A stretch of DNA of 64,000 bases from the IMG/VR virus record IMGVR_UViG_3300013104_000001, positions 124,001 through 188,000 of that record. One strand, written 5' to 3'. A program made the translations under genes and the position numbers. Shown here in pieces: positions 6,073 through 37,647 of the stretch. The notes under the pieces were generated by a model, which saw only the letters and a program-made list of their open reading frames with translations, did not search any database and was not told the DNA's origin. The stretch's first letter is position 1; each line of letters opens with the position of its first letter.

Positions 6073-6492
6073 ATGCTTAATAAAGAAATACGCATTGTCG
6101 TAGCGTCTGTACGAGGCTTCGCAGATGTTGAGCGTTTAAAACTGACTATTGACGGTCTCCTCAAGGATATTTACGAGATGAACGAAGGTCTCGATGATGA
6201 GGATGATGAACTGATTACTGACAAGAAGATCGTGTTTATGATCAATGGCGAGGGGAGAACCGCTGCGGATATTCTGCCAGCGCTTGCCATGGAGCGTAAC
6301 ATCGAAGTGGAAGTACTCAAAGTCGATTGGTCAAAAGGTAAGAAAGCCTTTTTTGATAACTGTGCCGTTTTAGGCTCAAAGTCAACACACGCTATTATTT
6401 TCACGGACAGCAAAGATGACGGGATGCAGACACTGATTAAATCATGTCTCGACGCCGGGTCTCGTGTTCGTAGTTATAGCGCCTCTATCTAA
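6073..6492 (+). CDS. degenerate SLOG (YspA/DUF2493-like) domain protein
   Basis: RIVVASVRGF..., NGEGRTAAD, VDWSKGKKAFFDN, THAIIFTDSKDDG are colinear with YspA-like motifs and with the C-terminal half of 7306..8181. Confidence 0.6.
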   Translation: MLNKEIRIVVASVRGFADVERLKLTIDGLLKDIYEMNEGLDDEDDELITDKKIVFMINGEGRTAADILPALAMERNIEVEVLKVDWSKGKKAFFDNCAVLGSKSTHAIIFTDSKDDGMQTLIKSCLDAGSRVRSYSASI

Positions 6493-6501
6493 GGTGTAAT
6501 C

Positions 6502-6945
6502 ATGATAGCCTCTGAAGCCAACGTCGGTATACTTGATATTAATGTCACCCACGTCATATGCACAGTTAATTGCGAAGGGCATATGGGTCGTGGCATCGCC
6601 TTGTATCTACGTAAATGTATTCCGGGGCTATACGATCGTTATAACGAACTTTGCAAACTTAAGCTGTTAACGGTGGATAAACTTTGGATCTACCGTTCGG
6701 CACCAAAACAGATCCTCTGCTTTCCAACGAAAGACAAGACCTGGGAAGACAGTCGTATCGAATGGATCGAGGCTAATCTGATTAAGCTTCGAAACACGTA
6801 TAAAGAGAAAGGCATTCGCTCTGTGGCAATGCCTCCTCTGGGGTGTGGAAACGGTAACTTAAAATGGGATGAGGTGCGAAGCCTCATTTATGCCATCTTG
6901 GGCGATTGTGACCTGGAAGTCCACATTTGTTTAGGTAGAAAGTAA
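6502..6945 (+). CDS. macrodomain ADP-ribosylhydrolase, DarG/Poa1p-like
   Basis: TVNCEGHMGRGIA, LCFPTK, SVAMPPLGCGNGNLKW closely match DarG-type macrodomain motifs. Confidence 0.9.
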   Translation: MIASEANVGILDINVTHVICTVNCEGHMGRGIALYLRKCIPGLYDRYNELCKLKLLTVDKLWIYRSAPKQILCFPTKDKTWEDSRIEWIEANLIKLRNTYKEKGIRSVAMPPLGCGNGNLKWDEVRSLIYAILGDCDLEVHICLGRK

Positions 6946-6959
6946 ATGAGGGAATTATC

Positions 6960-7313
6960 ATGAATACACTGGTTTTCTTGTATGTACTGGGCAGTATTTA
7001 TACAGTCGATGTCAAACCGATGCCTGATTACAAAACCTGTCGTGCCGCACAAGCTGTACTCGAAAAGGCTACGGCTGAGCAGAAATATAACGACGGACCT
7101 AATAAGACCGAGTGTTATATCGTCGATGAGAGTAAAGGCGGGTTTGTTGTCATTAGTGGTCGTGATCTTGAATTGCAGCGTCAGAGTGCCGAACTCGATC
7201 GATTGTCACGTGAGACTACAGTTAAGCTTACTCATCAGGTTGAAGTAAACGATCCTTCTAAGTCGGTCAAGTTACAACAGTTCTTGAAAGACCAGGAGAA
7301 CGCACATGAGTGA
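6960..7313 (+). CDS. hypothetical protein, hydrophobic N-terminus and a Cys pair
   Basis: GAGGG RBS; overlaps the next gene by 8 nt. Confidence 0.7.
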   Translation: MNTLVFLYVLGSIYTVDVKPMPDYKTCRAAQAVLEKATAEQKYNDGPNKTECYIVDESKGGFVVISGRDLELQRQSAELDRLSRETTVKLTHQVEVNDPSKSVKLQQFLKDQENAHE

Positions 7314-8181
7314 TGCTCGCGTAGTACCCGATCCGGCCAAGGACGGGGTTACCCACATCAACATTTATACCAAGGGGATGACTTGGCTTGGACAGCAGTT
7401 ATCCAACATGTCGTACTACAGCTTCGCCCATCCTAAACACGGGGTGTTCGGATCACTGGAGGCGTATTGGTATTGGTTAGCAACTGGTCAGCAGCACGAA
7501 GAACTCCGTAACCTGGCAGGTTTTAAAGCAAAGCTTGTTGGTAAACAGTTTGAACGTGTACCGGTGGATAACTTTGAAGAGCAGTTCAAGTTCGCCATGC
7601 AATTACGTTTAGAACAGAACCCGATCATTGCCAAAGCGCTGTCTGAATCACTGCTGCCGTTTGAGCACTATTTCTACTATAGTGGGAAAGTGGTCGATCA
7701 GTCAGATGCACATCGTTGGCAGCTCGACTTCTATGAACAATGGCGTAAAGATCATCCTGTTGAAGATCCATCGATTGCGCTTCTTATTTCCGGTTCTCGT
7801 AAAGAGAAGAACTACGAAAGCTTTAAGAAGATCGTAATGGATTACTTAGCGCCTTATCGTGAAAAGATTAAGGACAGCTACAAGATCGGGATTATCTCAG
7901 GGTTGGCGTGGGAAGGTCCAGATGACATGGCGATTCGTTTATGCCGTGAGGAAGGCTTCATGCTGATCGGTGTGCCAGCTAAATGGAATGAGCAAGGCAA
8001 GGCAGCGGGGATGATCCGTAATGGCGTGATGGGGCGCTTATGCACTCAGGCGTTGGTCTTCTGGGATGGTGAGTCACCAGGGACAAAAGGCCAGATTGAC
8101 TATTTGAAGAAAAATAATATAGACCATCTGGTTTATATTCACGGGCAACACGATCCCGAGTGGAAATCATCGGAACAATGA
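7306..8181 (+). CDS. NADAR-like domain fused to SLOG (YspA/DUF2493) domain
   Basis: N-half: LSNM..F..HGVFGSLEAYW, AKLVGK, AMQLRLEQNP (NADAR-like). C-half: ISGSR, IISGLA.EGPD, AKWNEQGKAAGMIRN, VFWDGESPGTK (YspA SLOG). Confidence 0.75.
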   Translation: MSDARVVPDPAKDGVTHINIYTKGMTWLGQQLSNMSYYSFAHPKHGVFGSLEAYWYWLATGQQHEELRNLAGFKAKLVGKQFERVPVDNFEEQFKFAMQLRLEQNPIIAKALSESLLPFEHYFYYSGKVVDQSDAHRWQLDFYEQWRKDHPVEDPSIALLISGSRKEKNYESFKKIVMDYLAPYREKIKDSYKIGIISGLAWEGPDDMAIRLCREEGFMLIGVPAKWNEQGKAAGMIRNGVMGRLCTQALVFWDGESPGTKGQIDYLKKNNIDHLVYIHGQHDPEWKSSEQ

Positions 8182-8193
8182 GAGGGAGTCATC

Positions 8194-8478
8194 ATGTCAA
8201 CATTGCAGCTCGCGGTTAATAGCGAATACTTTGATGCCATGAAAGATGGGTCAAAACCGGAAGAGTATCGTTTGGTTAATAACTACTGGACCAAGCGTTT
8301 ACTTAACCGGGATTACGATCGTCTGGTGATTACCAAAGGTTATCCAAATCGCGCCGATACATCACGGCGCATTGAGGTGCCTTATAATGGCTATCAAATA
8401 AAAACCATTACTCATCCTCACTTCGGTGATCAGCCCGTGAATGTTTTCGCCATTAAAGTAAATCTGGAGAAACCATGA
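8194..8478 (+). CDS. ASCH domain protein
   Basis: LQLAVNSEYFDAMKDGSKPEEYR is the ASCH G-x-K-x-x-E-x-R signature; TKGYP. Confidence 0.85.
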   Translation: MSTLQLAVNSEYFDAMKDGSKPEEYRLVNNYWTKRLLNRDYDRLVITKGYPNRADTSRRIEVPYNGYQIKTITHPHFGDQPVNVFAIKVNLEKP

Positions 8479-9149
8479 ACGCAGCACGCCAGCAAGTCCA
8501 GGAGTTCATCCTGACTTCTATTGATGAAATCATGCCCGGTTCTAAAAACCGGGATATTTACGTAGACTTCTTTGCCCGTCAATCCGACGAGGCATTTGAA
8601 GCACTGATGCAGCGCATGGAAGAGGATGAAGAGATCTTTCCGTTCTACCATCCTAATTTCACCGGGAAGGTGATCGATGTGGAGCGTGTGATTGGGTTGA
8701 TTGAGAAACACGGCGATACCATTATGGAACAGCTGTATGACATCGATCCAGAAACCGGTCTACAGTATCTGACACCACTTAAGTATCCGGTGCTGTTATT
8801 GCCACTGCGTATTCAGCAGCAGAAGCTGCAGAAGAAAATGTCAGTGCCAAAAGACAACAATCACATCGATGACCTGACCAACCAGCCAACGACCGAATCC
8901 AAGGGCGCATCACTCTCATACCCAGAAGTACAGATCCTGTATGCAATGGGCGGTGATAAGATCCTGGAAGAGACCATGAAGGTTCGTGGTGGCGATGAGA
9001 AAGCTTTCCGTGATTATAACAATGCCATTATTGCAGACGGCGGCGTGACCATCGGAGCGATCAGTTCAAGTAAAACCAAAGTTAAATCGACTCTGACGGT
9101 ACAGACTATTCTAGAGGCGATGCACTTGAGCAACAACCTGGCTAAATAA
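8475..9149 (+). CDS. virion RNA polymerase beta subunit, C-terminal fragment (phiKZ gp149-like)
   Basis: RIQQQKLQKKMS, IDDLTNQPT.ESKGASLSYPE, ETMKVRGGD correspond to the RpoB C-terminus. Confidence 0.85.
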   Translation: MNAARQQVQEFILTSIDEIMPGSKNRDIYVDFFARQSDEAFEALMQRMEEDEEIFPFYHPNFTGKVIDVERVIGLIEKHGDTIMEQLYDIDPETGLQYLTPLKYPVLLLPLRIQQQKLQKKMSVPKDNNHIDDLTNQPTTESKGASLSYPEVQILYAMGGDKILEETMKVRGGDEKAFRDYNNAIIADGGVTIGAISSSKTKVKSTLTVQTILEAMHLSNNLAK

Positions 9150-29893: not shown

Positions 29894-30610
29894 ATGATGA
29901 ACAAAGACATTTTAGAAGTCCAGAAGATGCTAATCGGTGGAGGCTTCAATGTCGGGAAGGCTGGAGCAGATGGTCTGTATGGACCGTCTACCCGCGAAGC
30001 CCTTCGTCAATGTATTGCCAAAGCAACAACCGGTGGGGCAGCAAGCCCCACCACTCCTATCATCACTTCAGGTGACGGGTATGACTTAGCCTGGAGTGCG
30101 AAAGTCACTCCAGAGTTCTGTCGTAAGGTTGAGCATATGGCGCAAGCATTGCTGATGCCCGATGACGGTGCGAATAACTTCATGGCCTGCATGGCTTTTG
30201 AATCTGCTGAGACCTTCAGCCCTAGCATCCAAAACCAGGGTGGTGCGCCTTATTATGGCTTGATCCAATTTGGCGATGCGGCTGCTATCGATTTGAAAAC
30301 CACAACTGATGCTCTGCGTAAAATGACAGCGTTTGATCAGCTGGACTACGTGTATGAATTCTTCCGTCCCTATGCCGGTAAGTTGAAGTCACTAAGCGAC
30401 ATCTATATGCGCATTCTGTGGCCGAGAGCAGTTGGCCAGCCAGAGTCGTATGAACTGTGGAACAAAGCAACACGCCCAACAACCTATTTACAAAACCGCG
30501 GTTTGGACATCAATAAAGATGGTTCGATAACCAAAGCCGAGGCTGCGCAAATGGTACAGGCAAAATTGACCCGTGGCATGCAACCACAATTCCGTCGTAA
30601 GTTAACATAA
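29894..30610 (+). CDS. modular endolysin: PG-binding domain plus lysozyme-like/SLT catalytic domain
   Basis: VQKML...GADGLYGPSTREAL (PG_binding_1); MACMAFES, GLIQF; EF-hand-like DINKDGSITKAE. Confidence 0.85.
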   Translation: MMNKDILEVQKMLIGGGFNVGKAGADGLYGPSTREALRQCIAKATTGGAASPTTPIITSGDGYDLAWSAKVTPEFCRKVEHMAQALLMPDDGANNFMACMAFESAETFSPSIQNQGGAPYYGLIQFGDAAAIDLKTTTDALRKMTAFDQLDYVYEFFRPYAGKLKSLSDIYMRILWPRAVGQPESYELWNKATRPTTYLQNRGLDINKDGSITKAEAAQMVQAKLTRGMQPQFRRKLT

Positions 30611-32387: not shown

Positions 32388-33113
32388 ATGGACCTGTCTA
32401 CATTAACACGCAACAAAGACAAGGTCCGTGCCAACCTTGTGGAGTTAGACGATAACTCGGTGGTAGCAAGAGAGGGGTGTAAGATTTACATCCCTGGTCG
32501 TTACGTCAACAAAGGGTTGGCAGGGATCGGTGACTCGATCTGGACCGTGGGTATCTACACCATGGTGACGGACTCTGGTTACTATTGCGCTGCGCTTGGC
32601 CCTGCATTAATCGCGCTGGAACCAACTGATATCCGCCAGGTAAAACTGGATGGTAACCCGTACTATGAATTCTCATTTGCGCCGGGTGCGACAGTTATTA
32701 AGTCAACAGTTGTCGGTAAGAACGATCGTATTATCGGACCGCTCTTTAATGAGTTCATTATTAATGGTAATGTGAACTACGGGTTTAACTTGCTCGATCT
32801 GATTAAGCTGTTCAAGCTTTCACAGAAGTACTGTGGTTTCACCATGGGTACGAACAACCAGATCTTCGAAGCGATTATCAACATCATCGCTCGTGACAGC
32901 AAAGATCTCAACAAGCTGTATCGCTACACAGTGACATCGCTTGAAGATATCTACACTAACCCGCCTACCATTATCGGTCTGCGTAATGCGGCTAAGACGT
33001 CGACGAACACCGTGGCGAAACTGGTGGGTAGTTATTTTGCGGATGGCTTAGTCTCTGCATTGATCAATCCATCAGATCGTGTAGAAGGCGTTGAAGAGAT
33101 TTTAAGGAAATAA
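32388..33113 (+). CDS. phiKZ gp176/SPN3US gp244-like protein, candidate fifth vRNAP subunit
   Basis: CKIYIPGRY, IARD...YR, KLVGSYFADGLVSALINPS; synteny. Confidence 0.65.
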   Translation: MDLSTLTRNKDKVRANLVELDDNSVVAREGCKIYIPGRYVNKGLAGIGDSIWTVGIYTMVTDSGYYCAALGPALIALEPTDIRQVKLDGNPYYEFSFAPGATVIKSTVVGKNDRIIGPLFNEFIINGNVNYGFNLLDLIKLFKLSQKYCGFTMGTNNQIFEAIINIIARDSKDLNKLYRYTVTSLEDIYTNPPTIIGLRNAAKTSTNTVAKLVGSYFADGLVSALINPSDRVEGVEEILRK

Positions 33114-33115
33114 TT

Positions 33116-33814
33116 GTGGATAACACTACGGCGCAAGCTATCGGTAATTTTCTTGATCTTTTTCCCAATAGCATTCGTAATAACGTGGATATCGTGGAAG
33201 CGCCGGAAGGTGGCACCATTGCTTTCCACATCAGTACTAACCCGAAGATCAAAGTATTCGAGCCTCGGGTCTCTCGCCGGACCATGAATAAAGAAGACCG
33301 TAGTGTTCCAAGAGTTTCTGCTGCTGCTACCTTAAACGGTTGTCTCTCTGGATACGCTGCGGCAATCTTTGATTGGGAGACACCTGGTCCGTGGGCTGGC
33401 GGCTGGAAGATCTATGCACTACGTTATGATCTGGCGTTAAAACCGAATAAGAAGATTCTGGCTGATGTCGAGAGCACTGAAGAGATCTGGCTCGTTGGTT
33501 ACGATAAAGAACACCGGGTTTATCCGGCTGTCCCAATGGGTGAGTTCTTTTTTACCTCGATTGCCCGTCAGTCTACTGGCGAAAAGAATCGACCGCGGAA
33601 ACTTGCGGTTACGGCATACATTCGTGTTGGCGAAGGCTACACGCTTCCTTTGAATAAGACTACGTTATTACGCTCAGGATTTTACCAACTCACGTATAAC
33701 GACTACTATCAGGCAATGGATCTTCGGAACCCGCAGGATGTTATCGTTAAACCTATTTCAGAGTCTGTGTATCAAAGCTTTAAAAAGTTAGATGCCGGAT
33801 TGCTGAGTTATTAA
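33116..33814 (+). CDS. putative ADP-ribosyltransferase-fold protein
   Basis: FHIS (H38), FEPR, ED..VPRVSAA.TL.GCL, DVESTEEIW (E123) give an ART-like strand1-His / strand2 / strand5-Glu pattern. Recognised by eye only. Confidence 0.45.
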   Translation: MDNTTAQAIGNFLDLFPNSIRNNVDIVEAPEGGTIAFHISTNPKIKVFEPRVSRRTMNKEDRSVPRVSAAATLNGCLSGYAAAIFDWETPGPWAGGWKIYALRYDLALKPNKKILADVESTEEIWLVGYDKEHRVYPAVPMGEFFFTSIARQSTGEKNRPRKLAVTAYIRVGEGYTLPLNKTTLLRSGFYQLTYNDYYQAMDLRNPQDVIVKPISESVYQSFKKLDAGLLSY

Positions 33815-33830
33815 CTTATTCGGTGAAATC

Positions 33831-34616
33831 ATGCCAGCTAATATTTCCTTTACCTGTCAGGTGCTTCGCGGTACCAACAAAGCAGGTTTGTTAAAGCCGG
33901 ATGCTAACGGGTATTATACCGTTGTACTCGGTGGATTTAATATCCGCAATGAAATGGGTAACTTCTACCCGTTCAACAAATACCTGGAAGAGATCTTTAA
34001 GAACAGCTCAACCTTCATGCGTAAGATCGAGAAGGGGCAGCTGCGCGGAGAGTGTGATCATCCGCAACCGTGGAAAGGCATGACCGAACGTGAATGGTTT
34101 AGCCGTCTGCGTAAGATCGAAACCAGTCGTGTATCACATCACATCCGTAACGTGACGCTGGACTTCAACAACTATCGTAGTCAGCATGGCGAAACCATGG
34201 TGGCGGTATTAGGTGAAGTCAAACCTGCCGGTGGTGAACTCGGTGATAAACTGCGTGCCTCATTAGAGAACCCGGATGAAGACACTGCCTTCTCTGTTCG
34301 TTCTCTGACACTGGACCAACCAATGGTTACCGGTGCATGGCGTAAAGATATCTACGAGTGCGTGACCTGGGACTGGGTAGAAGAACCTGGTGTGCGTAAT
34401 GCCACTAAGTATCATTCGCCTGGGCTAGAGTCATTCGACTCGTATGAGTTCTCTGCACAAACTGTTGGCGATATCCTGCTGTCTGGTAACGCTAACGTGG
34501 GTTATGGTTTAGAAGCTGACGCAACTGACCCACAACCACTGCGTGACCTGATGAAAGATTATCAGGCTGAAGCAGGTAGTAAGATCCTCACTCGCAAGTC
34601 CTTTATGCGTTGGTAA
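33831..34616 (+). CDS. prohead (head maturation) serine protease (phiKZ gp175-like)
   Basis: LRGECDHP, AFSVRS, VTWDWVEEPG; C-terminal GLE motifs (PGLES, YGLEA). Confidence 0.9.
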   Translation: MPANISFTCQVLRGTNKAGLLKPDANGYYTVVLGGFNIRNEMGNFYPFNKYLEEIFKNSSTFMRKIEKGQLRGECDHPQPWKGMTEREWFSRLRKIETSRVSHHIRNVTLDFNNYRSQHGETMVAVLGEVKPAGGELGDKLRASLENPDEDTAFSVRSLTLDQPMVTGAWRKDIYECVTWDWVEEPGVRNATKYHSPGLESFDSYEFSAQTVGDILLSGNANVGYGLEADATDPQPLRDLMKDYQAEAGSKILTRKSFMRW

Positions 34617-35991: not shown

Positions 35992-36160
35992 CACGGAAAG
36001 CTTAGACAACTTTCCGTGTCAAACATATCCGGCCATAAGGCCATCCACTAATAAAGTGTGAAAGTCAACTTCACGCATTAGAAGTGCGCCCGAAAGACAT
36101 TCAAAAAATAGACAAAGTAATCAAAGGTGCGGACCGGAAAAACCGTACCTTTCTTTACTG
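35992..36160 (+). ncRNA. candidate structured RNA / leader (four hairpins)
   Basis: CACGGAAAG/CTTTCCGTG, GGCC/GGCC, CTAAT..GTGTGAA/TTCACGC..ATTAG and AAAGGTGCGG/CCGTACCTTT in a 250-nt intergenic gap. Confidence 0.35.
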
Positions 36161-36228
36161 TGTTTAATTCCAAACACGGTACTCACCCTCAGCATTCAGA
36201 AAGAATGCCAAATGAAAGGATAAAGTAC

Positions 36229-37647
36229 ATGAAACTCAATATCGATGCGAACGTAATCAAATCTCCTCTGCAAAGTGAATTTGTGATTGCTGATCGTATT
36301 CAGCTCGAAACGGATAGCCTGTCTATTATGCTTAACGCGATAGACATCAACGTCCCGATCAACAATATCAACACCGGTACGTTCAACGAGTTCCGCTATG
36401 AAGGTCGCCAGAAAGAAGGTAACTGGATGGCGTACTGGGTCGCTGTGAAAGCGAAAGACCTGATCGAACTCTATCCGCATATCCATGCGCATCTACCTGG
36501 GGCGGTACGTAACCAAACGCCTTATGATTTCCAGATGAGCATTGGTTATGGCATCGAGCCCCTCAAGGCATTTGAACGAGACCCTAATCAACCAGCATCC
36601 CGTTACATCGAAGTGAATGCCGTCGAAGCCGGTAGCGAAGAGCTTGCTGTACGTCAGGTGTTATCTGCAGTTGCCGGTCAGTTACTGACAAGCCACCGCG
36701 ATAACGCACACTTCGTAAACATGATTAGTGTGCATATTGCCGAACAGTTAATCCATTTGGGGATGACTCACTTTAAACAAGGTGATCTCAAGTTCAACGG
36801 ATTCCTGCGGACACACAACGGCCTGGTTCAAACAGAACGTATGTGGCGTCTAGGCAATCCTGGTACCGGCAAACTGTCTCTGCGCCAGACGTTGCTCACG
36901 CAACAAACTGGGCCTAATACCCGCACTACTCATTTGGTCAATGCAGATGACCATCAGGTATACGGGATTGATGGTAAGTACGAACAGCCGAACGGTTCCA
37001 TGAACGCAGGTTTTATGCCAGGTTTCAATTCATTCACGGGTGGTAACCAAGGTCATTACAACACGCCTGGCTACGCTCAGCAGTACGGCATGCCAGCAGG
37101 ACCGCTGTCATCAGATGGTCCAAACTATCAGCCGATGAACATGCCAATGCAATTCGGTATGGAACCAGGTATGAATCCGATGCAACAGCTGGCAAACAGT
37201 GCGCCAAATCAGTCCGTGACTATGCCTGGTGTTAAACCACTGATGGAACACACACCTGAAGAGTTACGCAAGTTGATGCCTTCGATGTACGGCAATGTAT
37301 CAGACAAAGTTGAAACTGCGCCAGTGCCAGCTATCAACAATCGCACTCTGACTGAAAGTGATCTGGGGCCACGTAACGAAGACACGCCAATCGTCGGTAA
37401 GGTGGTAAGCATCGAAGTAGCTCCGGTGCTGATTACCGAAGACACTGCATCAGTGGTTACCGATGGTAGTCACAATGCATACGGCGTATATCGTCGCGAG
37501 AAACAAGATGATACGACCCTTGCAGTACATATCGGTGATTTCCTTAGCGCCGATCTGGCTGTGAAGTATGCTATCAAAATGGGTAAGTTCTTTAACGTGT
37601 ATGTTGACGACTACGTTAGCGCTCCTCCTGTAGAAGCTAACGAGTAA
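36229..37647 (+). CDS. hypothetical protein with central G/M/P/Q/N low-complexity region
   Basis: ATG at 36229 after AAGGA; ends before tandem terminators. Confidence 0.75.
   Translation: MKLNIDANVIKSPLQSEFVIADRIQLETDSLSIMLNAIDINVPINNINTGTFNEFRYEGRQKEGNWMAYWVAVKAKDLIELYPHIHAHLPGAVRNQTPYDFQMSIGYGIEPLKAFERDPNQPASRYIEVNAVEAGSEELAVRQVLSAVAGQLLTSHRDNAHFVNMISVHIAEQLIHLGMTHFKQGDLKFNGFLRTHNGLVQTERMWRLGNPGTGKLSLRQTLLTQQTGPNTRTTHLVNADDHQVYGIDGKYEQPNGSMNAGFMPGFNSFTGGNQGHYNTPGYAQQYGMPAGPLSSDGPNYQPMNMPMQFGMEPGMNPMQQLANSAPNQSVTMPGVKPLMEHTPEELRKLMPSMYGNVSDKVETAPVPAINNRTLTESDLGPRNEDTPIVGKVVSIEVAPVLITEDTASVVTDGSHNAYGVYRREKQDDTTLAVHIGDFLSADLAVKYAIKMGKFFNVYVDDYVSAPPVEANE

Follow-up and report, generated by a model that had tools for sequence, protein, structure and literature searches.

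A predicted divergent ADP-ribosyltransferase-fold protein encoded among virion RNA polymerase and head-protease genes of a nucleus-forming jumbo phage

The gene and its immediate setting

The DNA analysed here is a stretch of 64,000 nucleotides (nt), hereafter the window, covering positions 124,001 to 188,000 of the IMG/VR virus record IMGVR_UViG_3300013104_000001, a contig of 287,406 bp to which the locus is 100% identical. It comes from a jumbo phage of Erwinia that falls in the Agricanvirus group (Ea35-70, RAY, AH06) of the nucleus-forming Chimalliviridae. Jumbo phages that form a nucleus come with an RNA polymerase of their own. Next to a virion RNA polymerase (vRNAP) gene and the gene for the prohead protease lies an open reading frame (ORF) with a GTG start, encoding a protein of 232 residues that is 82–85% identical to its counterparts in the Ea35-70, RAY and AH06 isolates. 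We report that this protein very probably has the fold of the ADP-ribosyltransferase (ART) superfamily. We favour the view that it is a divergent member that transfers ADP-ribose to a macromolecule.

The ORF is a real gene and not a chance reading frame, since tblastn found homologues in 61 phage records and a profile search of 1.84 billion representatives returned at least 510 clusters (50% identity) at E ≤ 1e-3, 176 of them at E ≤ 1e-30. An initial annotation, made from the sequence alone, had placed it between a gp176-like gene and the prohead protease gene, and both neighbours proved to be what was claimed (Table 1). The gp210 family, to which the upstream neighbour belongs, is one of the five vRNAP subunits in the Goslar structure paper. 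The TAA stop of the upstream gene (33111–33113) is located between the ribosome-binding site and the GTG, with a gap of 2 nt to the latter, and this position suggests that translation of the two genes is coupled. A scan of the plus strand listed no terminator-like site between the gene and its neighbours.

Table 1. Features of the ART-fold gene and its two neighbours (window positions; residue counts refer to 207 family domains)
Feature	Position	Strand	Remarks
ART-fold gene	33116–33814	+	RAY gp169, Goslar gp211, phiKp24 gene 324; PHROG 5043 (E 1.6e-60)
Ribosome-binding site AAGGAA	33104–33109	+	6 nt ahead of GTG
Predicted ART-superfamily core domain, residues 20–176	33173–33643	+	strands 1–7 and helices
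H38, candidate strand-1 NAD-site residue	33227–33229	+	H in 202/207, R in 2
R66-V-S68, strand 2	33311–33319	+	R66 in 203/207; at position 68, S 87, C 61 and T 41 of 207
E123-I-W125, start of strand 5	33482–33490	+	E123 (candidate catalytic Glu) 204/207; W125 207/207
C-terminal extension, residues 177–232	33644–33811	+	two strands and helices, invariant G188; outside canonical ART core; most ART alignments stop near residue 175
Upstream neighbour, phiKZ gp176 / RAY gp168 / Goslar gp210 family	32388–33113	+	PHROG 2926, E 1e-96
Downstream neighbour, prohead maturation protease (phiKZ gp175 family)	33831–34616	+	Pfam Peptidase_S80 E 3.2e-82; PHROG 3014

Predicted fold and candidate active site

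The initial annotation had called the protein a candidate ART on account of three motifs, F-H38-I-S, R-V-S68-A-A and T-E-E123-I-W, spaced like strands 1, 2 and 5 of the ART fold. All three are present at the residues named (codons 33227–33229, 33317–33319 and 33482–33484), and their spacing is borne out by an AlphaFold2 model of the full-length protein, built from 128 diverse relatives (mean predicted local distance difference test, pLDDT, 95.4; predicted template modelling score, pTM, 0.91). In this model H38 lies in a strand formed by residues 34–40, and R66 and S68 in a strand at 66–70, followed by helices at 73–79 and 83–88 and strands at 97–104 and 106–110. After a loop with a short helix, E123 opens a strand at 123–126, and two long strands come next. 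This is the order of the split beta-sheet core of ARTs (b1-helix-b2-helix-b3-b4-loop-b5-b6).

Comparison of a predicted model with ART folds, a check proposed in the initial annotation, gave a consistent answer. In an unbiased structure-alignment search with the full-length model, ranks 1 to 10 were all ART-superfamily proteins. With the domain-only model, an unbiased scan of 48,161 chains gave the same superfamily for all of the best 50 listed. A second look at the top 1000 chains of Foldseek placed ARTs in each of the first 24 positions. Foldseek itself gave EcPltA as the best match of the core domain (E 0.022, probability 0.90), and with the full model no match in the PDB better than E 0.26. 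The structural matches included CARDS toxin, pierisin, TreTu, BC2332, RES, diphtheria toxin, MbcT, NatT, CC0527, Arr, Tne2 and cholix toxin, as well as several PARPs, IcmQ, DarT, exotoxin A and Vis. That the resemblance to ARTs is a coincidence, and the protein unrelated to them in fold and function, is highly improbable: one superfamily fills the top of the 48,161-chain scan among the matches listed, the order of secondary-structure elements fits the ART core, and conserved residues fall on strands 1, 2 and 5.

An H-Y-E, R-S-E or H-H-h pattern of NAD-site residues was looked for on these three strands, and conserved candidates were found on each of them. Besides the residues in Table 1, P50 (205 of the 207 family domains), E60 (204), D117 (192), C76 (184) and Y80 (181) are conserved, and G188 shares the invariance of W125. 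S68 itself varies, but 189 domains (91%) have S, C or T there. About 12 polar residues are near-invariant among family sequences that are only 25–35% identical. In ARTs, a histidine or an arginine at the strand-1 position separates the H-type from the R-S-E clades. The site is best described as a hybrid: its strand-1 His recalls the H-Y-E enzymes and its small strand-2 residue, bearing a hydroxyl or thiol group, the R-S-E enzymes; strand 5 carries a Glu, and the family adds E60-D61-R62 and R66. A Cys-His peptidase was considered and rejected, because 23 of the 207 domains have A, S, T or L instead of C76 and no peptidase fold is found among the matches. A charge-based signature of nucleic-acid binding was also rejected, given that the isoelectric point within the family ranges from 4.8 to 9.5.

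Five metagenomic relatives of 471–495 residues (P0046, P0143, P0146, P0029 and P0115) are tandem duplicates. In the first three, the N-terminal copy has lost H38, R66 and E123, and in two cases also E60, and has retained P50, W125 and G188; the C-terminal copy keeps the full set. Such a pattern of loss is expected if H38, R66 and E123 are catalytic rather than structural residues. It suggests, from sequence, that each of these three proteins could be a pair of a pseudo-enzyme and an enzyme.

As an alternative, the protein could be an ART-fold enzyme that consumes or uses NAD+ without transferring ADP-ribose to a macromolecule: an NADase or NAD+ phosphorylase similar to RES, MbcT or Tne2, or an enzyme of the Tpt1/KptA type whose substrates would be RNA phosphate ends or ADP-ribose-derived defence signals. 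RES toxins, NatT, MbcT, Tne2 and three Tpt1/KptA structures score within about 1–2 Z units of the best transferase matches, and the conserved R55, R62 and R66, located between strands 1 and 2, could hold phosphates. The RES-domain R...E...S signature with its strand-1 Arg was not found in the phage protein. Tpt1/KptA enzymes combine an N-terminal winged-helix RNA lobe with an ART lobe, whereas our model has only two short helices and a strand ahead of the core, and Tpt1 aligns by its C-terminal lobe alone (chain residues 109–224). We consider an enzyme of this kind rather unlikely.

Genomic context, family and the distant macrodomain

The gene is co-oriented and tightly packed with virion-module genes that encode subunits of the vRNAP, head proteins present in high copy number and the prohead protease, and the protein is therefore probably expressed late, together with the virion module. 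In 41 IMG/VR loci of the family, the gene lies between the gp176-like gene and the protease gene in 10 and directly after the protease gene in 13, which means that the S80 protease adjoins it on one side or the other in 23. An N-terminal propeptide cut by this protease at A29-P30-E31 was considered and rejected, the motif being unconserved even in close relatives and the segment being part of the folded model.

Some relatives are much longer (576–1389 residues) and carry the ART-like domain at their C-terminus. The two whose contigs were examined, P0041 and P0065, occupy the same slot ahead of the protease gene. The extensions contain SMI1/KNR4 (SUKH) domains in 4 of 10 tested proteins; these domains lie upstream of the ART-like domain in P0065 (L003 9001–12180), P0079, P0072 and P0112. 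In most cases, a SUKH domain is the immunity protein of a polymorphic toxin, and the SUKH part may be an inhibitor in cis or an adaptor. P0128 (596 residues) and P0148 (528 residues) combine the ART-like domain with another modifying enzyme, a GNAT acetyltransferase in one case and a Pol-beta-type nucleotidyltransferase in the other, an arrangement that resembles the multi-effector architecture of phage polyvalent proteins. HNH endonucleases are also found among the extensions and are probably homing-endonuclease insertions. Fusion to the neighbouring vRNAP subunit was rejected, phmmer having detected no neighbour-like segments in the long relatives.

For the Goslar orthologue, Table S4 of the virion paper reports 4 peptides of gp211 (22.6% coverage) and estimates 3.3, 4.9 and 7.7 copies per virion, next to about 7–21 copies for the vRNAP subunits. 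Packaging in the virion is thus possible. The injection assays of the Goslar paper concerned gp60, gp61, gp208 and gp209. Injection of the ART-fold protein with the DNA, by analogy with T4 Alt, is a tentative idea to which we give somewhat less than even chances.

All inspected contexts of family members are phiKZ-like jumbo-phage contigs. Two motif-based scans of 185,579 genomes found no relatives in bacteria or archaea, and cellular homologues with those two motif sets therefore appear to be absent. A word-indexed protein search with the family alignment returned family members alone. The family thus appears so far to be restricted to jumbo phages, where the gene is accessory and not part of the core. 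RAY gp169, Goslar gp211, phiKp24 gene 324 and a gene of PCH45 are orthologues, each annotated as hypothetical, and PHROG 5043 has no known function. In Serratia phage 2050HW, the gene seems to be split into two ORFs. Structure matches in BFVD include short phage proteins (105–190 residues) that share the fold at high Foldseek probability; their sources include Rhizobium phage RHph_Y68, the phiKZ-like Pseudomonas phage SL2 and, as a second protein, Klebsiella phage Eowyn. Judged from their models, these may be minimal relatives outside the syntenic slot. No earlier description of the family was found in the main text of two comparative surveys of NAD-related and jumbo-phage genes, in a 2026 jumbo-phage review or in the RAY core-genome paper, and in the Goslar structure paper gp211 is mentioned in a supplementary table only. 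Earlier recognition by sensitive profile methods is conceivable, the comparison having covered the surveys' main text.

The initial annotation had also proposed that the protein writes ADP-ribose marks and may pair with macrodomain and NADAR erasers encoded at 6.5–8.2 kb. The macrodomain is genuine (6502–6945, 147 residues, Pfam Macro E 4.5e-11). The NADAR call found no match: the 291-residue ORF at 7306–8181 corresponds to PHROG 652, of unknown function, in its N-terminal half and is weakly SLOG/YAcAr-like in its C-terminal half. This cluster of NAD/ADP-ribose-type genes (6073–8181, plus strand) further contains a SLOG/YAcAr-like ORF at 6073–6492 and an ORF of 117 residues without significant family match. 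Beside it, at 8475–9149 on the plus strand, an ORF of 224 residues matches PHROG 3233, 'RNA polymerase beta subunit' (E 1e-93), and is a small separate subunit fragment.

A self-contained circuit, in which marks set by a virion-injected writer would be reversed by the phage's own macrodomain or NADAR protein, is very unlikely in our opinion. An ART fold and a bona fide macrodomain do occur in one genome, and many phages with the ART-like gene, namely RAY-like phages, PhiEaH1, KpGz_1, Kodama and, weakly, Goslar, also have a macrodomain homologue. However, the genes are 26 kb apart in different gene blocks, the NADAR partner was not confirmed, and neither linkage nor distribution supports a pairing. 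Macrodomain homologues were found in 312 phage records versus 61 for the ART-like gene, and they also occur in phages without the ART-like family, among them phiKZ-like phages and N4-like podophages of about 76 kb. According to the main text of one survey, 56% of jumbo phages carry Macro domains (PMC9503650). The phiKZ macrodomain AdfM strips ADP-ribose deposited by host DarT2 from phage DNA (PMC13309987), and surveys, in their main text, read phage clusters of Macro, NADAR and SLOG genes as countering host-derived ADP-ribose marks or signals (PMC9503650, PMC7824862). The pairing is therefore not needed to account for the macrodomain found here.

Two other genes of the window are worth mentioning. 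One, at 29894–30610 (plus strand), is placed after the vRNAP beta gene and ahead of the genes for head proteins and encodes a standalone lytic-transglycosylase-like protein of 238 residues with a weak PG_binding_1 match. This gene has no counterpart in the phiKZ cluster, and its product matches the C-terminal parts of far larger PHROG families (baseplate hub, peptidase). The ORF at 36127–37647 (plus strand, 506 residues, GTG start) includes a long Gln-, Asn-, Pro-, Met- and Gly-rich stretch; its RAY counterpart, gp174, is annotated with 394 residues only, so that either the start site or the length differs.

Proposed function and comparison with known systems

We favour the reading that the protein is a divergent member of the ART superfamily that acts as a macromolecule ADP-ribosyltransferase and is probably made late, and we give this reading a probability of roughly 55%. 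The family appears to be a new, divergent and phage-restricted one inside the well-known ART superfamily. The fold and the motif-to-strand assignment support the ART proposal of the initial annotation; transferase activity itself is a prediction from the model. That the protein is an active enzyme using NAD+ is probable on the same basis, and for transfer to a macromolecule the chances are about even. In the proposed mechanism, NAD+ would bind in the cleft formed by the strands that carry H38, S68 and E123, the ribose-nicotinamide bond would be activated by E123, and ADP-ribose would be passed to a macromolecular acceptor. The protein would probably be synthesised late, along with the virion module, and each virion could then take along a few copies that would exert their effect early in the following infection, as is the case for T4 Alt.

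The putative equivalence of the active site was drawn from secondary structure and from arithmetic on aligned ranges. On the side of strand 1, the starts of these ranges set H38 opposite the His or Arg of PARP1 (model residue 11 corresponding to chain residue 854), TNKS2, cholix toxin, exotoxin A, pertussis toxin and heat-labile enterotoxin (LT), which we take to be PARP1 H862, TNKS2 H1031, cholix H460, pertussis toxin R9 and LT R7; for exotoxin A the residue is presumably H440, one residue off. The manner of this derivation weighs against the proposed function, as do several other observations. On the side of the glutamate, the ranges for PARP1, PARP2, TNKS2 and PARP16 are consistently 4 residues off, and the equivalence of E123 to the PARP Glu is plausible in the model. 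The combination of H, S/T/C and E is a hybrid of the classical triads, with a variable position 68. No ART-clan Pfam match was obtained for the protein or for the 128 relatives (only DUF6886 below threshold, E 0.032), PADLOC gave no match for the protein, and two PDB profile searches with family alignments returned no ART (one of them gave a spurious xylanase match). The gene lies away from the protease gene in 18 of the 41 loci, sometimes beside a large helicase-like gene. It is missing as gp169 from the table of 68 Chimalliviridae core genes, which has RAY gp167, gp168 and gp170 (PMC10299810). It is absent from phiKZ, where gp176 abuts gp175 at a distance of 11 nt, leaving no room for it, and where the family hidden Markov model gave no hit over 175–215 kb. 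The virion evidence for the family is one low-copy detection in Goslar. Since that preparation also held PhuZ, chimallin and thymidylate synthase (ThyA), some at higher levels, the gp211 signal could possibly be carry-over; gp169 is not listed in the mass-spectrometry study of RAY crude lysate, and the structure paper on phiKp24 contains no proteomics.

Several of these observations also bear on the idea that the protein is catalytically inert, like the pseudo-PARP of TASOR or IcmQ, and has a structural, chaperone or assembly role in the prohead or in vRNAP packaging. Tight synteny with the prohead protease and head proteins would fit such a role, pseudo-ARTs and IcmQ are among the structural matches, and no NAD-related sequence signature was detected with Pfam or the PDB profile searches. 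However, an inert protein hardly explains why about 12 polar residues are kept near-invariant at such low identity, nor why the degenerate copies in the tandem duplicates have lost polar residues and not those of the hydrophobic core. A gene outside the Chimalliviridae core and absent from phiKZ would also be unusual for an essential assembly factor. We regard an inert protein as quite unlikely, and retain the macromolecule ADP-ribosyltransferase as the favoured function.

A more specific version of this function can be formulated. The protein could be a capsid-carried ART specific to jumbo phages, with an unusual His / Ser-Cys-Thr / Glu site, that is delivered together with the vRNAP. In nucleus-forming phages, at the stage of the early-infection vesicle, it would modify a macromolecule of the host or of the phage, either protein or nucleic acid, and the SUKH-extended forms would be inactive until the neighbouring S80 protease trims the extension. 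Taken as a whole, this scenario is unlikely. The favoured function would nevertheless be of interest in several respects. An entirely unannotated and widespread ART-fold family, with its at least 510 clusters, is embedded in the vRNAP/head-protease module of many Chimalliviridae, and a candidate enzymatic effector joins the as yet few proteins that could be active at the very outset of infection. A gene labelled "hypothetical" in every examined record receives a concrete functional prediction with key residues H38, R66 and E123. If activity is confirmed, the hybrid active-site pattern would widen the known sequence range of the ART superfamily.

DUF6886 (PF21820) is the sole Pfam model touched by the protein, whose H-x-S...P-x-I-x-x-F-x-P-R stretch (residues 37–60) aligns with profile positions 1–24, as it does in the relative P0033. 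At 14.3 bits versus a cutoff of 27 bits, and with 24 of 164 positions covered, the protein falls outside this family, whose model is touched by only 2 of the 128 relatives. DUF6886 is uncharacterised, and a literature search found no paper mentioning it. The closest known systems include TreX and TreTu (PDB 8s2m and 7zhl), minimal ART toxins of Rhs/type VI secretion systems, to which the phage protein is 10–13% identical without any profile link. These are C-terminal tips of bacterial polymorphic toxins with immunity proteins, whereas the phage protein stands alone, has a C-terminal extension of 55 residues and has His instead of Arg on strand 1.

The R-S-E enzymes (EcPltA, pertussis toxin S1, cholera toxin and LT, pierisin/scabin/MTX) also have a strand-1 Arg, in contrast to the His of nearly all family domains, and share no sequence similarity with the phage family. 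Their E/Q-x-E motif is absent from the phage protein, position 121 being T in the window protein and position 122 mostly D, N or G in the family. With the H-Y-E enzymes (PARPs, diphtheria toxin, exotoxin A, cholix toxin) the family shares an H-x-S that closes strand 1 and a Glu that opens strand 5; the conserved Y80 and Y100 are located close by.

T4 packages the ART Alt in its head and injects it. This R-S-E enzyme has a mass of about 75 kDa, and how it is packaged and processed is known, as is its target, the alpha subunit of RNA polymerase. No homology to T4 Alt, ModA or ModB was detected, the phage protein having no Pfam ADPrib_exo_Tox match and His instead of Arg on strand 1. Unlike for Alt, packaging is suggested by a single detection, that of Goslar gp211 by mass spectrometry, and early transcription in the phage is independent of the host RNA polymerase. 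The likeness that we propose is one of strategy, and would consist of a late gene in a virion module, a low copy number in the virion, action at the start of infection and a head protease encoded alongside.
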